In this document: positions 7,581-59,059 of the stretch, piece after piece
Layout of the letters: the number at the start of each line of letters is the position of its first letter
How positions within the stretch are numbered: the first letter of the stretch is position 1
NCBI RefSeq assembly: GCF_006345805.1
Contig: NC_043023.1
Coordinates: forward strand, 20,708,001-20,772,000
Direction of reading: 5' to 3'
Length of the DNA stretch: 64,000 nt
From: Octopus sinensis
Taxonomy: Eukaryota
Translations under genes and position numbers: made by a program
Notes under the pieces: generated by a model
Databases searched by the model: none
What the model was told of the DNA's origin: nothing
What the model saw: the letters and a program-made list of their open reading frames with translations, nothing else

Positions 7581-8619
7581 ACAAGCATATATTTCTGAAC
7601 CCTACCCGTCTGATGGTGGTGGTGGTGGTGGCTTTGTACCTGAAATATATATATAAAAAAAAGCTTGCTCGATTTATTTTTATATTTGTATTGTTAGAAA
7701 CTCTCCACTTTGCTTTTCTGTTTGAAATAAAAACAAAAAGCTTTGTAGAAGGGGAGATAACTACGGCGATTCTCTCCAAATGTTCCATTGAAGTCCTCGG
7801 TGGAGGTCATTTGGGTTTTGTTGCAACAGAAAATGATGTTTTAGCTCGATTTACAACTCCCTGATGCCTTCCATTTGTCCCCTGTGTTCCTTTAATTAGG
7901 GCATTAGGTTTCATCTAATTTAATCCAACTTCAGCCTTGTAATGCTTTTATGTTTAGACGATAAACAGCTCCCCTTATGTGTGTGTGTGTGTGTGTGTGT
8001 ATTTTTGACTATTTTGCTACAGCCCTTGTTGTCATATATATATATATATATATATATATATATATGTATGTGTGTGTGTGTGTGTGGAGGTGCAATGGCC
8101 CAGTGGTTAGGGCAGTGGACTCGCGGTCGTAGGATCGCGGTTTCGATTCCCAGACCGGGCGTTGTAAGTGTTTATTGGGCGAAAACACCTAAAACTCCAC
8201 GAAGCTCCGGCAGGGGGTGGTGGTGATCCCTGCTGTACTCTATCGCCGCAAATTTCTCTCACTCTTTCTTCTGTTGGCCTGCTCGCTTAGCCAGCGGGGT
8301 GGCATCATTTGAAGGCTAAAACAATGTGAAGCACATTGTGACCAGCGATGTGTAGCAACATCTGATAGCCTGGTCGGTCACGGTGATGTATATATATATA
8401 TATATATATATATATATATATATATATATATATACTAAGCAATAAGGGTTTAGCAACGAATTGCCTTACCACATACCGAATTTAGAAATAGCAGTCAAAG
8501 GGTTATAGCTATTTCTTCTACTAAAAAGGGAGATCTCAGTAAAAACAGCATTTGGAAGGCAGACACAAACAGGTAAGAGAGAATGAATTGACTGCAATCT
8601 ATCATACATTTTTTAGTTA

Positions 8620-8726
8620 TCCACGGACGTACGTTTCGAAATCAAGTTTTAAGGAAAGCATAAGAATTAAATATTAAATATTAAATAATTCTATCTTACC
8701 GAAACTTCTTTTCTCTTCAGCGTGGA
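8620..8726 (-). ncRNA. type I hammerhead ribozyme motif (left arm)
   Basis: minus strand: tccacg-CTGAAGA-G...C-GAAA-C-GTAC-GTC-cgtgga; stem I 6 bp perfect, long stem II, palindromic GTAC loop on a 2-bp stem III. Confidence 0.72.
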
Positions 8727-8892
8727 ATACTATAATCATAAATGATTATATATTGAATTTTGAGATACTAGGAGGCACCAACTCAACTCAGTATCAGAGC
8801 GAGCTAGAATCTAGCTCGCTCTGATACTGAGTTGAGTTTGGTGCCTTCTGGTATCTCAAAATTCAATATATAATCATTTATGATTATAGTAT

Positions 8893-8999
8893 TCTACGCT
8901 GAAGAGAAAAGAAGTTTCGGTAAGATAGAATTATTTAATATTTAATATTTAATTCTTATGCTTTCCTTAAAACTTGATTTCGAAACGTACGTCCGTGGA
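8893..8999 (+). ncRNA. type I hammerhead ribozyme motif (right arm, sense to KDM5 pre-mRNA)
   Basis: CTGAAGA 8899-8905, GAAA 8982-8985, GTAC loop, GTC cleavage triplet 8991-8993; stem I tctacg/cgtgga with one G.U. Confidence 0.7.
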
Positions 9000-9373
9000 T
9001 AACTAAAAAAATGTATGATAGATTGCAGTCAATTCATTCTCTCTTACCTGTTTGTGTCTGCCTTCCAAATGCTGTTTTTACTGAGATCTCCCTTTTTAGT
9101 AGAAGAAATAGCTATAACCCTTTGACTGCTATTTCTAAATTCGGTATGTGGTAAGGCAATTCGTTGCTAAACCCTTATTGCTTAGTATTACTTAAATTTT
9201 CCTCGAATGAGGCTTTTACATGCCGAAGACTACTTGGTGTAATTGATAATTTTTCCAAATTAATTAATTTCACCCTTCATTATTACTATATATATATATA
9301 TATATATATTGGTAAAAATGGTAAGATAACAAAAGAAAGAAAGAGACCTCGTTATTATGTAAATAGAGGAATT

Positions 9374-9596
9374 TATCTGTAAATGTAATATGTAACAATT
9401 ATTCGTAGCCAATATAAAACTCTGAGTTTCGGATGCTGAGGTGGAAATCCACAACACCATCTCTTTGGTTCACCATCTCTTCACTTATATGGCCGGATAA
9501 CTGAAGAGATGGTGGTGTGGATTTCCACCTCAGCATCCAAAACTCAGAGTTTTATCTTGGCTACCGAATAATTGTCACATATTACATTTACAGATA
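9374..9596. mobile_element. small foldback element with degenerate hammerhead motifs
   Basis: arms about 9374-9464 and 9503-9596; right arm gataa-CTGAAGA-GATG...CATC-c-AAAAC-TCAGA-GTT-ttatc. Confidence 0.65.
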
Positions 9597-9613
9597 TATA
9601 TAGATAATAATTT

Positions 9614-57364: not shown

Positions 57365-57760
57365 GGTGGCGAACTAGTAGAAACGTTAGCGCGCCGGACG
57401 AAATGCGTAGCCGTATTTCATCCGCCGCTAACTGCTGAGTTCCAATTCGGCCGAGGTCGACTTTGCCTTTCATCCTTTCGGGATCGATAAATTAAGTACC
57501 AGTTACGCACTGGGGTCGATGTAATCGACTTAATACGTTTGTCTGTCCTTGTTTGTCCCCTCTATGTTTAGCCCTTTGTGAGTAATAAAGAAACAGGTAT
57601 TTCGCCCGTCGATACGTTATGAGTTCAAATTCAGCCGTGGTCGACTTTGCCTTTCATCATTTCGGGGACGATCAATTAAGTACCAGTAAAAGACTGAAGG
57701 TCGATGTATTCGACTTGTCCCACGCCCAAATTTCACTTCTGGTGCCTATTGTAGAACAAT
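57365..57760 (+). mobile_element. SINE family A
   Basis: head + about 1.5 bodies. Confidence 0.72.
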
Positions 57761-58117
57761 ATATCTTGATTAGCCAATATCTTGTTACCAAAATCCATGG
57801 CTTTTTCCAGAGAATATCCATGTCTCTGTTCGAATTCTGCCAAAGCTAACATTCACTTTTAACGTTTTAGTGTCAATAAAATAAGAAGCAGGTTCATATC
57901 GGGGTCGAAGTAATAAACTAGCAAACTCCCACAACAGTTCAGGCCCCATGTATCTATGGCTTTTTTTCACTTTCTCTATTTCTCACTCACTCTTTAAATA
58001 TATATATATGTATGTATGTATGTATATATATATATATATATATATATATATATATATTTGTATATTATTGGTGAATTGAAGAAATGGAGCTGAATGAAGA
58101 TTGCACAGAAATCGTTT

Positions 58118-58210
58118 TATTTCATTCTACACGTGTTTCGAAAGGCACAATTTACCAAAATCCGATTGAATAATGAGACCATATTGTGTCTTTCTCTTCA
58201 GGAAGAAATA
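58118..58210 (-). ncRNA. type I hammerhead ribozyme motif (left arm, intact core)
   Basis: tatttcttc-CTGAAGA-GAAAG-acacaa...ttgtg-c-CTTTC-GAAA-C-ACGT-GTA-gaatgaaata; palindromic ACGT loop. Confidence 0.72.
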
Positions 58211-58376
58211 GGAAATCCGTTGGAAAAAACAAAAACAGAACAGAGGCGGAGCAAAACAAATCGAACGAGGAGGCTCCTAAGAGCCCATGGCAAAAGTTTT
58301 GCCATGGGCTCTAGGAGCCTCGTTCGATTTGTTTTGCTCCGCCTCTGTTCTGTTTTGTTTTTTCCAACGGATTTCC

Positions 58377-58468
58377 TATTTCTTCCTGAAAAGAAAGACA
58401 CAATATGGTCTCATTATTCAATCGGATTTTGGTAAATTGTGCTTTCGAAACACGTGTAGAATGAAATA
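58377..58468 (+). ncRNA. hammerhead motif (right arm) with core change CTGAAAA (G8->A), probably inactive
   Basis: mirror of 58118-58210 except that 58386-58392 reads CTGAAAA. Confidence 0.55.
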
Positions 58469-59059
58469 AAACGATTTCTGTGCAATCTTCGTTCAGCTCC
58501 ATTTCTTCAATTCACCAATAATATTTTAATTTCAATTATCCGCACCAACGCACGGTTGCAACACCATATGGTTGTACCTCCAACCGTGCTGTCTTCTGCT
58601 GTGATTTTTGCTACCAAGGTATCGGTTAAACTTTTGATTAATCTGCTACAAGATTATTCATCTTTCTATTTCACATAATATATATTTGTATATATATATT
58701 TAAAATTTATAAGTTTAAATTATTTAAATAATTTAATTTTATCTTTTATATTTTAAATTAATTTTTATGTATTGGCTTATGTTTTTCACTGTTTGATTTG
58801 CCTAACAGTGGTTGTATCTCTAATTAATATAATATAATATAATATATTATACTATAAATGGATTTAATCCTAAATCTAATTTTTCCCTGTAAGTTTGGAT
58901 TTATCCCTAATATTATATATATATAATTATATTCCCTAATATTATATATATATATATATATTATATAATATTTATATATATATTATAATATATATATATA
59001 ATATATATATATAATTATATAAATATTATATATATATATATATATATATATATATTATA

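Follow-up and report, generated by a model that had tools for sequence, protein, structure and literature searches.

Hammerhead-bearing palindromes in (TA)n arrays as probable insertion by-products of truncated Penelope-type elements

The 64-kb stretch of DNA analyzed here (the window) contains a set of short repeats that have only their 3' ends in common (table 1). A (TA)n array adjoins every copy, including all nine copies of a conserved ~80-nt terminal block (T) and all four copies of a downstream extension (M). The evidence base comprises about 11 insertion events, all from this single window: six are inverted and five are plain truncated or single copies, with one-sided extensions of M, K or other sequence. 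The loci are non-coding and were called ORF-free; a 113-aa ORF in 58094–58435 returned neither an exact database record nor a homologue.

A preliminary description of this DNA had reported palindromes and one inverted-repeat element, and arm alignments bear out their coordinates with at least 93% identity. Fold-back 1 consists of 377-nt arms that are 98.7% alike (pairing 8432–8614 with 9006–9188 and 8609–8781 with 8838–9010), fold-back 4 pairs 58062–58144 with 58442–58524 and 58142–58234 with 58353–58445, and fold-back 3 has a 28-bp duplication at its centre and a left arm that ends within T. The unequal pair (arms 9597–9748 and 9900–10051, 93% identity) comprises copy A, which runs on the minus strand from 9899 to 9597 and carries a hammerhead ribozyme (HHR), and copy B, which runs on the plus strand from 9900 to 10172, lacks the HHR and retains M complete. 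An additional fold-back that lacks an HHR bears a one-sided extension of 64 nt (46917–46980). Arms within one fold-back share 93–100% identity, far above the ~75% over ~100 nt shared between elements, and the inverted arm ends at differing AT-rich points among copies. A 14-bp direct repeat (ATATATTTGTATAT; 58052–58065 and 58680–58693), itself a variant of the TA array, brackets the unit 58066–58679 as a target-site duplication.

Table 1. Copies, extensions and hammerhead motifs in the window.
Feature	Position	Strand	Description
Fold-back 1	8433–9187		two head-to-head copies; 1-nt centre near 8810; T at both ends
Intact type I hammerhead, fold-back 1 left arm	8620–8726	-	C3 8720, H17 8626
Intact type I hammerhead, fold-back 1 right arm	8893–8999	+	C3 8899; predicted cleavage after C8993; helix II 76 nt
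Extension M of fold-back 1	9188–9287	+	one side only, 3'; then (TA)12 at 9288–9310
Extension K of fold-back 2	9311–9373	- (sense strand)	one side only, 3'
Fold-back 2	9374–9596		arms 93% alike; spacer 18 nt
Degenerate hammerhead, fold-back 2	9414–9488	-	C3 to G
Degenerate hammerhead, fold-back 2	9497–9555	+	G12 to A
Unequal head-to-head pair (copies A and B)	9597–10051		
Copy A hammerhead	9790–9875	-	core intact; helix I ACUGUG/CACAGU (perfect 6 bp)
Extension M of copy B and short (TA)n	10052–10173	+	
Plain 5'-truncated copy	19375–19569	-	part of T, then M, then (TA)4; no inverted partner
Solo 5'-truncated K copy	46790–46858	+	ends at (TA)n array
HHR-less fold-back	46917–47236		arms 46981–47087/47130–47236, 96%; TA arrays on either side
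Non-palindromic 450-bp copy	48430–48880	-	flanked by two (TA)31 arrays; T-like 3' end 48431–48491
Intact type I hammerhead, solo motif	48547–48657	-	C3 48647, H17 48557; 8-bp helix I; helix II 68 nt
Fold-back 3	48944–49416		arms 48944–49163/49197–49416, 220 nt, 99%
Marginal hammerhead-like motif, fold-back 3	49056–49118	-	
Marginal hammerhead-like motif, fold-back 3	49242–49304	+	
Right-side-only tail of fold-back 3	49417–49612	+	rest of T 49417–49482, M 49483–49589, (TA)n
Solo T-like 5'-truncated copy	49716–49798	+	TA arrays on both sides
Fold-back 4	58062–58524		1-nt centre near 58293
Intact type I hammerhead, fold-back 4	58122–58207	-	C3 58201, H17 58128; helix III ACACGUGU
Mirror hammerhead, fold-back 4	58380–58464	+	CUGAAAA, G8 to A
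One-sided 3' extension of fold-back 4	58525–58679	+	
Solo T-only copy	62300–62368	+	92.5% identical to fold-back 1 T; within (TA)n array

The preliminary description treated the fold-backs as a family in their own right, a view that the remaining copies contradict. Three of the families also occur as plain 5'-truncated copies (62300–62368; 19375–19569, minus strand; 46790–46858), the second of which matches the unequal pair and its extension (9597–10172) at 91% in M/extension (10035–10167) and at 84% in the T segment. There is also the unequal pair with its one HHR, a non-palindromic copy with an intact HHR (48430–48880) and the HHR-less fold-back (46981–47236). The plain truncated copies, the unequal pair and the HHR-less fold-back therefore indicate that the palindromes arose during insertion and do not themselves transpose as units. 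Direct pseudo-LTR pairs and direct or tandem repeats of the unit are absent from these loci, at which Tandem Repeats Finder returned TA arrays, the one 28-bp duplication and nothing else; pattern scans of metagenome contigs for the T motif gave zero matches. We rejected an assembly artefact because a few mismatches separate the arms, every unit is delimited by TA arrays and conserved ends, and one unit has a target-site duplication. The assembly gap at 42280–42379 (both edges GGAAGAGA) is spanned by no element; the closest element considered (46790–46858) is over 4 kb away, the closest locus of the preliminary description (48549–48655) over 6 kb, and the gap has no bearing on our claims.

Hammerheads were searched for with the descriptor helix I–CUGANGA–helix II–GAAA–short helix III–UH–helix I. 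In its strict form it found five distinct cores in the window, whereas 200 dinucleotide shuffles averaged 0.11 cores, never exceeding 2, and shuffling within local 500-nt segments gave 0.085; intact cores with looser stems numbered eight against 0.47. The motifs are hammerhead-like far beyond chance, and the enrichment over shuffled controls agrees with the preliminary description. The only match outside the loci described there (33427–33311, minus strand) is probably due to chance. Allowing one core mismatch gave 11 matches against 4.5 in shuffles, which is too noisy to be used alone, and fold-backs 2 and 3 (9374–9596 and 48944–49416) are for this reason assigned from context and homology.

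The hammerhead layout proposed as common to these loci is real but varies in quality: the cores are intact in both arms of fold-back 1, one arm of fold-back 4 and the solo motif, the cores of fold-back 2 are mutated in both arms, the motif of fold-back 3 is marginal, and in the unequal pair the base of helix II is weak. Both hammerheads of fold-back 1 have the G10.1–C11.1 pair, helix III ACGUACGU and the cleavage triplet GUC, and the solo motif (48547–48657) folds with a z-score of -3.3. Those of fold-back 2 have an additional C ahead of G12, and in copy A (9790–9875) helix III is down to one pair (GAAACGCAUC). In fold-back 3 the cores are present in both arms, but positions 10.1–11.1 are mismatched (A.A), and the segment shows no folding advantage over shuffled sequence (z +1.8). 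The fold z-scores of single arms are unremarkable for two intact copies; at three loci the centroid fold shows helices I and II around an open core. Several features go beyond what the descriptor demands, namely G10.1–C11.1, a helix II of at least 8–12 bp and a perfectly palindromic helix III in two families; the short palindromic forms (ACGUACGU, ACACGUGU and a loop containing UGCA) resemble those of hammerheads from Penelope-like elements (PLEs) and retrozymes, as had been suggested. We dropped a descriptor output that gave the unequal pair a 121-nt helix II, the GAAACGCAUC reading being the one that aligns with the other families. We likewise rejected T as a second, decayed hammerhead: GCUAUUUCU is common to T and to helix I of two copies, but T has no core.

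The sense HHRs all face outward, toward the terminal block, the one-sided extension and then (TA)n, such that the sense strand points to the 3' end in all six independent events, with the predicted cleavage site 45–220 nt from that end. The placement of the sense ribozyme in the 3' arm on both strands is accordingly correct for the three palindromes that have a convincing motif. Across loci, 87% of helix cells are paired, compared with 51% in shuffles (none of 500 as high), a count that is partly circular, as four of the seven rows were picked by a descriptor that demands pairing. All 11 pairs vary on both sides, and the GAAACG(UA)CGUYC block and T align across three families, with helix I differing by compensatory changes. 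With this qualification, stems I and II do differ between loci yet still pair.

Covariance models gave the preliminary description no such backing: none of the Rfam 15 hammerhead families (Hammerhead_1, Hammerhead_3, HH9, HH10 and Hammerhead_II) matched at the gathering score or at E<=10 anywhere in the window, nor was there a hammerhead match at E<=10 in the 1.8 kb of 8400–10200 searched alone. Rfam scans of the palindromes returned microRNA-hairpin noise only. Curated hammerhead models miss these copies entirely, probably because of the 30–76-nt helix II and the minimal helix III; in that case, genome surveys built on such models would underestimate the amount of ribozyme-bearing Penelope-type debris here.

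On balance, these loci are probably dead copies, 5'-truncated and non-coding, that stem from several related families of retroelements, with palindromes that formed at insertion and a PLE as the likely parent. We hypothesize that the element RNA consists, from 5' to 3', of upstream sequence, a type I hammerhead, about 45–200 nt, the terminal block (T in the main family) and a 60–160-nt 3' segment (M, K or other). Target-primed reverse transcription would lay copies in, or with, (TA)n arrays; for some copies, the (TA)n may be a templated tail instead of a target. In about half of the events DNA synthesis would reverse at the 5' end of the truncated copy (cDNA snap-back, a template jump to a second cDNA and twin priming are candidates for this turn-round), producing a palindrome of two outward-facing copies that meet head to head at a 1–18-nt centre. 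The returning arm would halt at variable AT-rich points, which would leave the 3' extension one-sided. The hammerhead would be part of the 3' region of the parent element, in which its palindromic helix III would let it dimerize and so process tandem or multimeric transcripts, and it would be a passenger in the fold-backs. The parent is likely a member of a PLE clade that carries HHRs and targets (TA)n, or else a non-autonomous element derived from the pseudo-LTR of such a PLE. The comparison with Penelope reverse transcriptase/GIY-YIG elements suggested in the preliminary description yielded no partner: no such ORF is linked to the copies, and the eight largest ORFs in the window all encode LINE-type domains (Exo_endo_phos, RVT_1, zf-RVT). 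Since no reverse transcriptase partner was found in the window, we can only infer the PLE link. PLE- or retrozyme-like non-autonomous or truncated elements, as first proposed, remain the best reading of these non-coding, (TA)n-associated loci. We rejected palindrome formation by DNA-level breakage at (TA)n, which leaves the outward conserved 3' ends and the one-sided extensions unexplained.

An unlikely but not negligible alternative is that these are SINE-like non-autonomous elements with a hammerhead, moved not by a PLE but by a LINE with microsatellite tails or targets. Sm-alpha in Schistosoma is a SINE-like element that carries a hammerhead, and twin-priming inversions are well established for L1. 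LINE copies ending in (TAA)n/(ATA)n tails are present in the window, as are tRNA-derived SINEs that adjoin TA arrays, and the elements described here are 5'-truncated with a fixed 3' end. Database matches to one LINE ORF were scattered among shrimp, fish and corals and point to no particular host. However, T, M and K lack similarity to the 3' ends of the window's LINEs, and the signature published for PLEs combines (TA)n targeting, hammerheads of the dimer type and exact head-to-head copies at high frequency (PMC8557442; PMC4209133).

It is improbable that the loci are fold-back or MITE-type DNA transposons with a TA target-site duplication (Tc1/mariner-like) that captured a hammerhead by accident. 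Long terminal inverted repeats, TA-rich flanks, the lack of an ORF and, in some copies, a conserved terminal block at both ends would fit such elements, but arms within a copy are far more alike than arms of different copies, the extension is one-sided, inverted arm ends vary and truncation proceeds from one side only toward a common 3' end. The duplication at one unit is 14 bp and not TA, with the proviso that TA-rich flanks mask short duplications. A distinct class of hammerhead-bearing "fold-back retrozymes," for which the hairpin RNA or cDNA itself would be the replicative or regulatory form and the long helix II a new subtype missed by current models, is in our view equally doubtful; under this reading the hairpin would be, for example, a snap-back intermediate that a (TA)n-specific PLE normally makes, or dsRNA that feeds editing or small-RNA pathways.

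We regard as very unlikely the proposal that the fold-back is a selected device, an antisense "safety catch" in which the antisense arm is made first and silences the ribozyme in host transcripts, with the dsRNA feeding ADAR or Dicer. Its thermodynamic part holds: in a transcript of the whole palindrome 92–100% of HHR nucleotides pair with the antisense arm, predicted fold energies are -147 to -650 kcal/mol versus -15 to -25 for the ribozyme alone, and the sense copy lies in the 3' arm in all convincing palindromes. These properties are, however, automatic for two outward-facing head-to-head copies, such pairing is true of any palindrome, and there is no evidence of design. Indeed, the same families occur partnerless with an intact HHR (48430–48880), with unequal arms or as an HHR-less fold-back, and the arms gather core mutations and hence give no sign of selection. 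As each strand has one sense HHR, a fold-back cannot form the cis dimer that these ribozymes supposedly need. It is scarcely credible that AT-rich palindromes full of hairpins, never having been ribozymes, came to resemble hammerheads by chance, as the lack of an Rfam match, the two of six loci that need relaxed criteria (with ~4.5 matches in shuffles too) and the unremarkable single-arm z-scores of two intact copies are set against counts of 5 versus 0.1 and 8 versus 0.5 in shuffles, the same position and orientation relative to the 3' end in six events, a palindromic helix III and G10.1–C11.1 that the descriptor did not demand, and covariation of helix I between homologous elements.

Rather than purpose-built switches, the fold-backs appear to be ordinary side products of Penelope-type insertion. 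The window offers a compact natural series, from copies that are simply truncated, through one inverted pair of unequal arms, to perfect palindromes whose centre is 1 nt, and this series could help to resolve the turn-round of PLE reverse transcription at the 5' end, which is unexplained in the PLE literature. The SINEs suggest that the host may be an octopus. Near-perfect hairpins of 200–750 bp in (TA)n arrays are possible ADAR substrates if the host is an RNA-editing-rich cephalopod, as is true of any inverted repeat.

Twin-priming inversions of L1 are established, as is the ability of reverse transcriptases to make self-primed (snap-back) cDNA. L1 inversions, like the loci described here, comprise two 5'-truncated copies head to head from a single insertion event; unlike them, they have unequal arms and form no palindrome, with neither a ribozyme nor a microsatellite target. 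Fold-back elements and Tc1/mariner-type MITEs share the long inverted arms, small size, lack of an ORF and TA-rich sites, but move as a unit with both ends fixed, whereas the present copies have a fixed 3' end, a variable 5' end, a one-sided extension and arms more similar to each other than to other copies. Animal non-LTR retrozymes (Cervera and de la Pena 2020, PMC7229834) are likewise small, AT-rich and non-coding, with a type I hammerhead and palindromic helix III, and are presumed to descend from PLEs and to rely on them (PMC7229834; Li et al. 2026, preprint). Retrozymes form head-to-tail tandem repeats of ~170–400 nt with one hammerhead each and give circular RNAs, whereas the present loci are inverted or single and never tandem.

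Evgen'ev and Arkhipova are said to have treated PLE insertion architecture in 2005. PLE insertions show heavy 5' truncation, often an adjacent inverted 5'-truncated copy, a one-sided tail, (TA)n targets (a bias of the Neptune, Naiad and Hydra clades), HHRs near the 3' end and nesting beside earlier copies (Craig et al. 2021, PMC8557442), and the loci in the window share the truncation, the inverted copy joined at the 5' end, the extension at one end, the (TA)n bias, the 3'-proximal HHR and the nesting. They differ in the shortness of both copies, which makes the whole insertion a near-perfect palindrome of 220–755 bp, in a one-sided extension of 60–160 nt compared with a published tail of 30–40 bp, and in the absence of the pseudo-LTR tandem. 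HHR-bearing non-autonomous elements derive from PLE pseudo-LTRs (bioRxiv 10.64898/2026.07.22.740005).

PLE hammerheads (Cervera and de la Pena 2014, PMC4209133; PMC6765202; also Lunse, Weinberg and Breaker 2017, as cited in PMC6765202) are of type I, with a short palindromic helix III, and act as dimers. Common to both sets are type I topology, a very short palindromic helix III implying a dimer, G10.1–C11.1, a helix II longer than in canonical animal hammerheads, strong compensatory sequence variation and residence of most copies in truncated non-coding fragments. The motifs described here differ in the lack of an Rfam match and of a nearby PLE ORF, in helix I (5–8 bp vs. 4–5 bp) and in helix II, which at 30–76 nt versus 6–8 bp is far beyond any described. 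Pairs of PLE hammerheads on opposite strands, 100–700 bp apart, have been reported (PMC4209133; PMC6765202). The palindrome looks like an insertion product of the kind published for PLEs (PMC8557442), with opposite-strand HHR pairs already known (PMC4209133); it is no new kind of biology, and these elements probably join the known HHR-bearing PLE-type debris.

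The fold-back loci of this window carry genuine hammerhead motifs and are dead, truncated copies of (TA)n-associated retroelements, most likely of Penelope type; judged by sequence organization, these elements do not move as palindromes. All of the palindromes claimed in the preliminary description were recovered in place, and (TA)n arrays adjoin each of them as well as the inverted-repeat element at 9597–10051 (table). The palindrome centres measure 1 nt in fold-backs 1 and 4, 18 nt in fold-back 2 and 4–5 nt plus a 28-bp duplication in fold-back 3. This exact tandem duplication (49137–49192) occupies one arm only and would fit slippage at the place where synthesis turned.

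Fold-back loci, one-sided modules and neighbouring repeats in the window
Feature	Position	Description	Source
Fold-back 1	8432–9188	two nested arm pairs, 98–100%	repeat finder
Fold-back 2	9374–9596	arms 93% alike	self-BLAST
Fold-back 3	48944–49416	220-nt arms, 99%	repeat finder
Fold-back 4	58062–58524	palindrome	repeat finder
Inverted-repeat element	9597–10051	152-nt arms, 93%, 151 nt apart	repeat finder
M copy	9188–9287	TA array next	
M copy	10052–10159	TA array next	
M copy	49483–49589	TA array next	
M copy	19385–19507	minus strand; TA array next	
K, one-sided module of fold-back 2	9311–9373	sense on minus strand	
Solo K copy	46790–46858		
SINE / SINE-like array regions	8088–8388; 845–1364; 4833–5571; 31932–32498; 38419–38766		
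Minisatellite	12895–14574	100-bp unit, 16.8 copies, 94% matches	
Minisatellite	41036–42013	32-bp unit, 30.6 copies, 97% matches	

A conserved terminal block of ~80 nt (T) sits 3′ of each sense hammerhead; its hairpin, AGAAAUAGC...GCUAUUUCU, precedes UUCGGUAUGUGG...AACCCU. Nine copies at six loci were identified by a profile search. Beyond T, on one side only, lies a module of 100–140 nt (M), and fold-back 4 likewise is extended on a single side, by 155 nt (58525–58679). Flanking the unit 58066–58679 is a direct repeat of 14 bp, ATATATTTGTATAT, which we read as a putative duplication of a target site within a variant TA array. The sense hammerhead faces the 3′ end in 6/6 independent events (1 in 64 under random orientation). 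T ends in a single telomere-like unit (AACCCTAA / TTAGGGTT) at 9170–9180, 10020–10030 and 9618–9626; runs of such repeats are used by endonuclease-less Penelope-like elements (PLEs), and the single unit here may be a coincidence. Reverse-complemented, the T core recurs as the 17-mer TAGAAATAGCAGCCAAA at 33819–33835 and in a 107-bp tandem repeat (47606–47871, 2.5 copies), and is thus common to otherwise unrelated repeats.

The preliminary description had treated the loci as a family of fold-back elements as such, a view that has to be abandoned because plain truncated, unequal, non-palindromic and hammerhead-free copies also exist. Three families contain both a fold-back and a plain 5′-truncated copy: 62300–62368 is T alone, with 92.5% identity to that of fold-back 1; 19375–19569 (minus strand) consists of partial T, M and (TA)4, its M segment being 91% identical to the M/extension segment 10035–10167 beside 9597–10051 and its T segment 84%; and the solo K copy is the plain counterpart of fold-back 2. 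The element at 9597–10051 comprises two unequal head-to-head copies, one (9899 to 9597) including the hammerhead and the other (9900 to 10172) without it and with the full M kept. At 48430–48880 an intact hammerhead lies in a copy that is single and not palindromic. The fold-back at 46981–47236, extended by 64 nt on one side, contains no hammerhead core, its arms being too short to reach one. This last locus (46917–47236 in all; 107-nt arms, 96%) lies between two TA arrays and is built like the hammerhead fold-backs. The inverted arm stops exactly at the T end in fold-back 1, ~25 nt into M in 9597–10051 and ~70 nt before the T end in fold-back 3. Arms within a fold-back are 93–100% identical, whereas different elements share only ~75% over ~100 nt. 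About half of the copies are fold-back insertions.

Copies share a fixed 3′ end, vary at the 5′ end and are often duplicated exactly, head to head, in one event. This pattern points to target-primed reverse transcription and then, we infer, to a turn of synthesis where the copy reaches its 5′ end. Snap-back of the cDNA could produce the turn, as could twin priming, which would account for the unequal pair; an end-to-end template jump to a second cDNA is a further candidate and would account for the one additional base at the centre. AT-rich microhomologies would finally serve to join the returning strand to the TA-rich target, explaining why the inverted arm ends at variable points. This series of insertion products may inform how these elements turn round during reverse transcription.

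An assembly gap at 42280–42379 lies >4 kb from the solo K copy, the nearest element treated, and >6 kb from 48549–48655, the nearest locus of the preliminary description; none of the elements spans it, and our results are independent of continuity across it. The gap is 100 N (region 42272–42387) with GGAAGAGA at both edges, so it may be spurious, with overlapping contig ends on its two sides. Additionally, a further short family has two copies in (TA)n (10172–10553 and 46397–46787), starting with ACTAGCAGTATCGCCC directly after the TA array and ending in ...CACACAGACAACTTCAGCTTTATATAT. LINE-type ORFs (RVT_1, zf-RVT) at 26134–31888, flanked by the very long trinucleotide arrays (TAA)17, (ATA)269 and (TAA)60, seem to belong to two LINE copies whose tails or targets are (TAA)n; shrimp, fish and coral proteins are the closest, at 64–67% identity. 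One tRNA-like SINE is enclosed by two microsatellite arrays, a 171–185-bp SINE-like unit forms several tandem arrays, and the SINE sequences probably resemble those of octopus genomes.

The hammerhead layout that these loci were said to share is intact in the best of them and eroded in others. Both arms of fold-back 1 carry the intact motif UCUACG-CUGAAGA-G...C-GAAA-CGUACG-U-C-CGUGGA, with a helix II of 76 nt (4+6 closing pairs). In fold-back 4 the minus-strand hammerhead is intact (helix III ACACGUGU, predicted cleavage triplet GUA), whereas G8 is changed to A on the plus strand. The minus-strand motif at 48547–48657 is intact, with a helix I of 8 bp, and folds better than all but 1/200 shuffles. 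The one hammerhead of 9597–10051, in its unique centre (9790–9875, minus strand), has a perfect helix I (ACUGUG/CACAGU), a poor helix II base and a helix III of one pair. Core mutations mark fold-back 2 (G12 to A in one arm, C3 to G in the other, and an additional C before G12), and fold-back 3 retains its cores and a 5-bp helix I with an A.A mismatch at 10.1-11.1, the segment folding no better than shuffles (z +1.8). Centroid structures of the three best copies have helices I and II formed and the core open.

Rfam 15 returned no hammerhead match in the whole window, at gathering scores or at E<=10, nor in 8400–10200 alone at E<=10; the only matches on the palindromes were to microRNA-hairpin models. 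We used a custom descriptor of the literature type (helix I with >=5/6 positions paired, CUGANGA, helix II of up to 130 nt closed by >=4/5 pairs, GAAA, 2–14 nt, U plus non-G, and the second strand of helix I). The motif is enriched over shuffled sequence: the strict descriptor finds 5 cores in the window, against a mean of 0.11 (max 2) in 200 dinucleotide shuffles and 0.085 in local 500-nt shuffles. Intact cores with looser stems number 8 (shuffle mean 0.47). Permitting one core mismatch gives 11 against 4.5, a noisy search, and degenerate copies therefore need other support. Features that the descriptor did not ask for are also present: G10.1-C11.1 in three families, extension of helix II to 8–12 pairs, and a perfectly palindromic 8-mer as helix III in 2/4 independent strong loci (by our own estimate, chance ~1 in 64 each). 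The only intact-core, looser-stem match beyond the loci already described (33427–33311, minus strand) is probably due to chance (0.5 expected); it has weak helices I and II and a stable 4-bp helix III, and lacks a TA array and T. As a by-product, the analysis yields a hammerhead variant that curated models miss and whose helix II is very long.

MAFFT alignment of the arms of 9597–10051 (minus strand), fold-back 3 and fold-back 1 joins the block GAAACG(TA)CGTYC and the whole terminal region, and the three hammerheads are therefore homologous. The helix I strands of this trio (CUACG/CGUGG, ACUGUG/CACAGU and UUGGG/CUCAA) confirm that stems differ yet pair, by compensatory changes. In a trimmed structural alignment of seven copies, 87% of cells are paired versus 51% in shuffles, a figure approached by 0/500 shuffles and by no slid register, and 11/11 pairs vary on both sides; this figure is partly circular because 4/7 rows were picked by a descriptor that demands pairing. 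The helix I differences in the trio are the cleaner evidence of covariation.

The proposed PLE/retrozyme-like identity holds in that the insertion anatomy matches PLEs, but no RT/GIY-YIG ORF linked to the copies was found (the large ORFs of the window are LINE-type), nor a pseudo-LTR tandem at these loci. The extension is longer than the published 30–40-bp tail and, in contrast to minimal PLE hammerheads, the ribozymes lack a bulged nucleotide after A9 and have a helix II of 30–76 nt. Given these misfits, we infer PLE membership rather than demonstrate it, and a LINE-dependent SINE-like element is a live rival.

The suggested "safety catch", in which an antisense arm transcribed first pairs with the sense hammerhead, is physically right in folds of whole-palindrome transcripts (−147 to −650 kcal/mol; 92–100% of hammerhead nucleotides paired with the antisense arm), but any palindrome would show it by its geometry alone. 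The absence of the partner arm from other copies of the same families and inactivating changes in the fold-back hammerhead cores speak against a selected device, and we saw no evidence of selection for the arrangement. Each fold-back has one sense copy per strand and so has no second copy with which to form, in cis, the dimer that ribozymes of this type probably require.

PLEs are annotated in octopus genomes (PMC13282606), and a 2026 preprint derives hammerhead-bearing non-autonomous elements of animals from PLE pseudo-LTRs (10.64898/2026.07.22.740005). The hammerheads of PLEs belong to type I, have a helix III that is palindromic and very short, and are thought to act as dimers, and opposite-strand pairs 100–700 bp apart are already known in Schistosoma (PMC4209133, PMC6765202). 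PLE insertions show strong 5′ truncation, an inverted 5′-truncated copy at the 5′ end and an extension at one end, with a (TA)n bias in the Neptune, Naiad and Hydra clades and hammerheads near the 3′ end (PMC8557442). The octopus copies resemble them in 5′ truncation, the inverted partner copy, the one-end extension, the association with (TA)n and the position of the hammerhead near the 3′ end.
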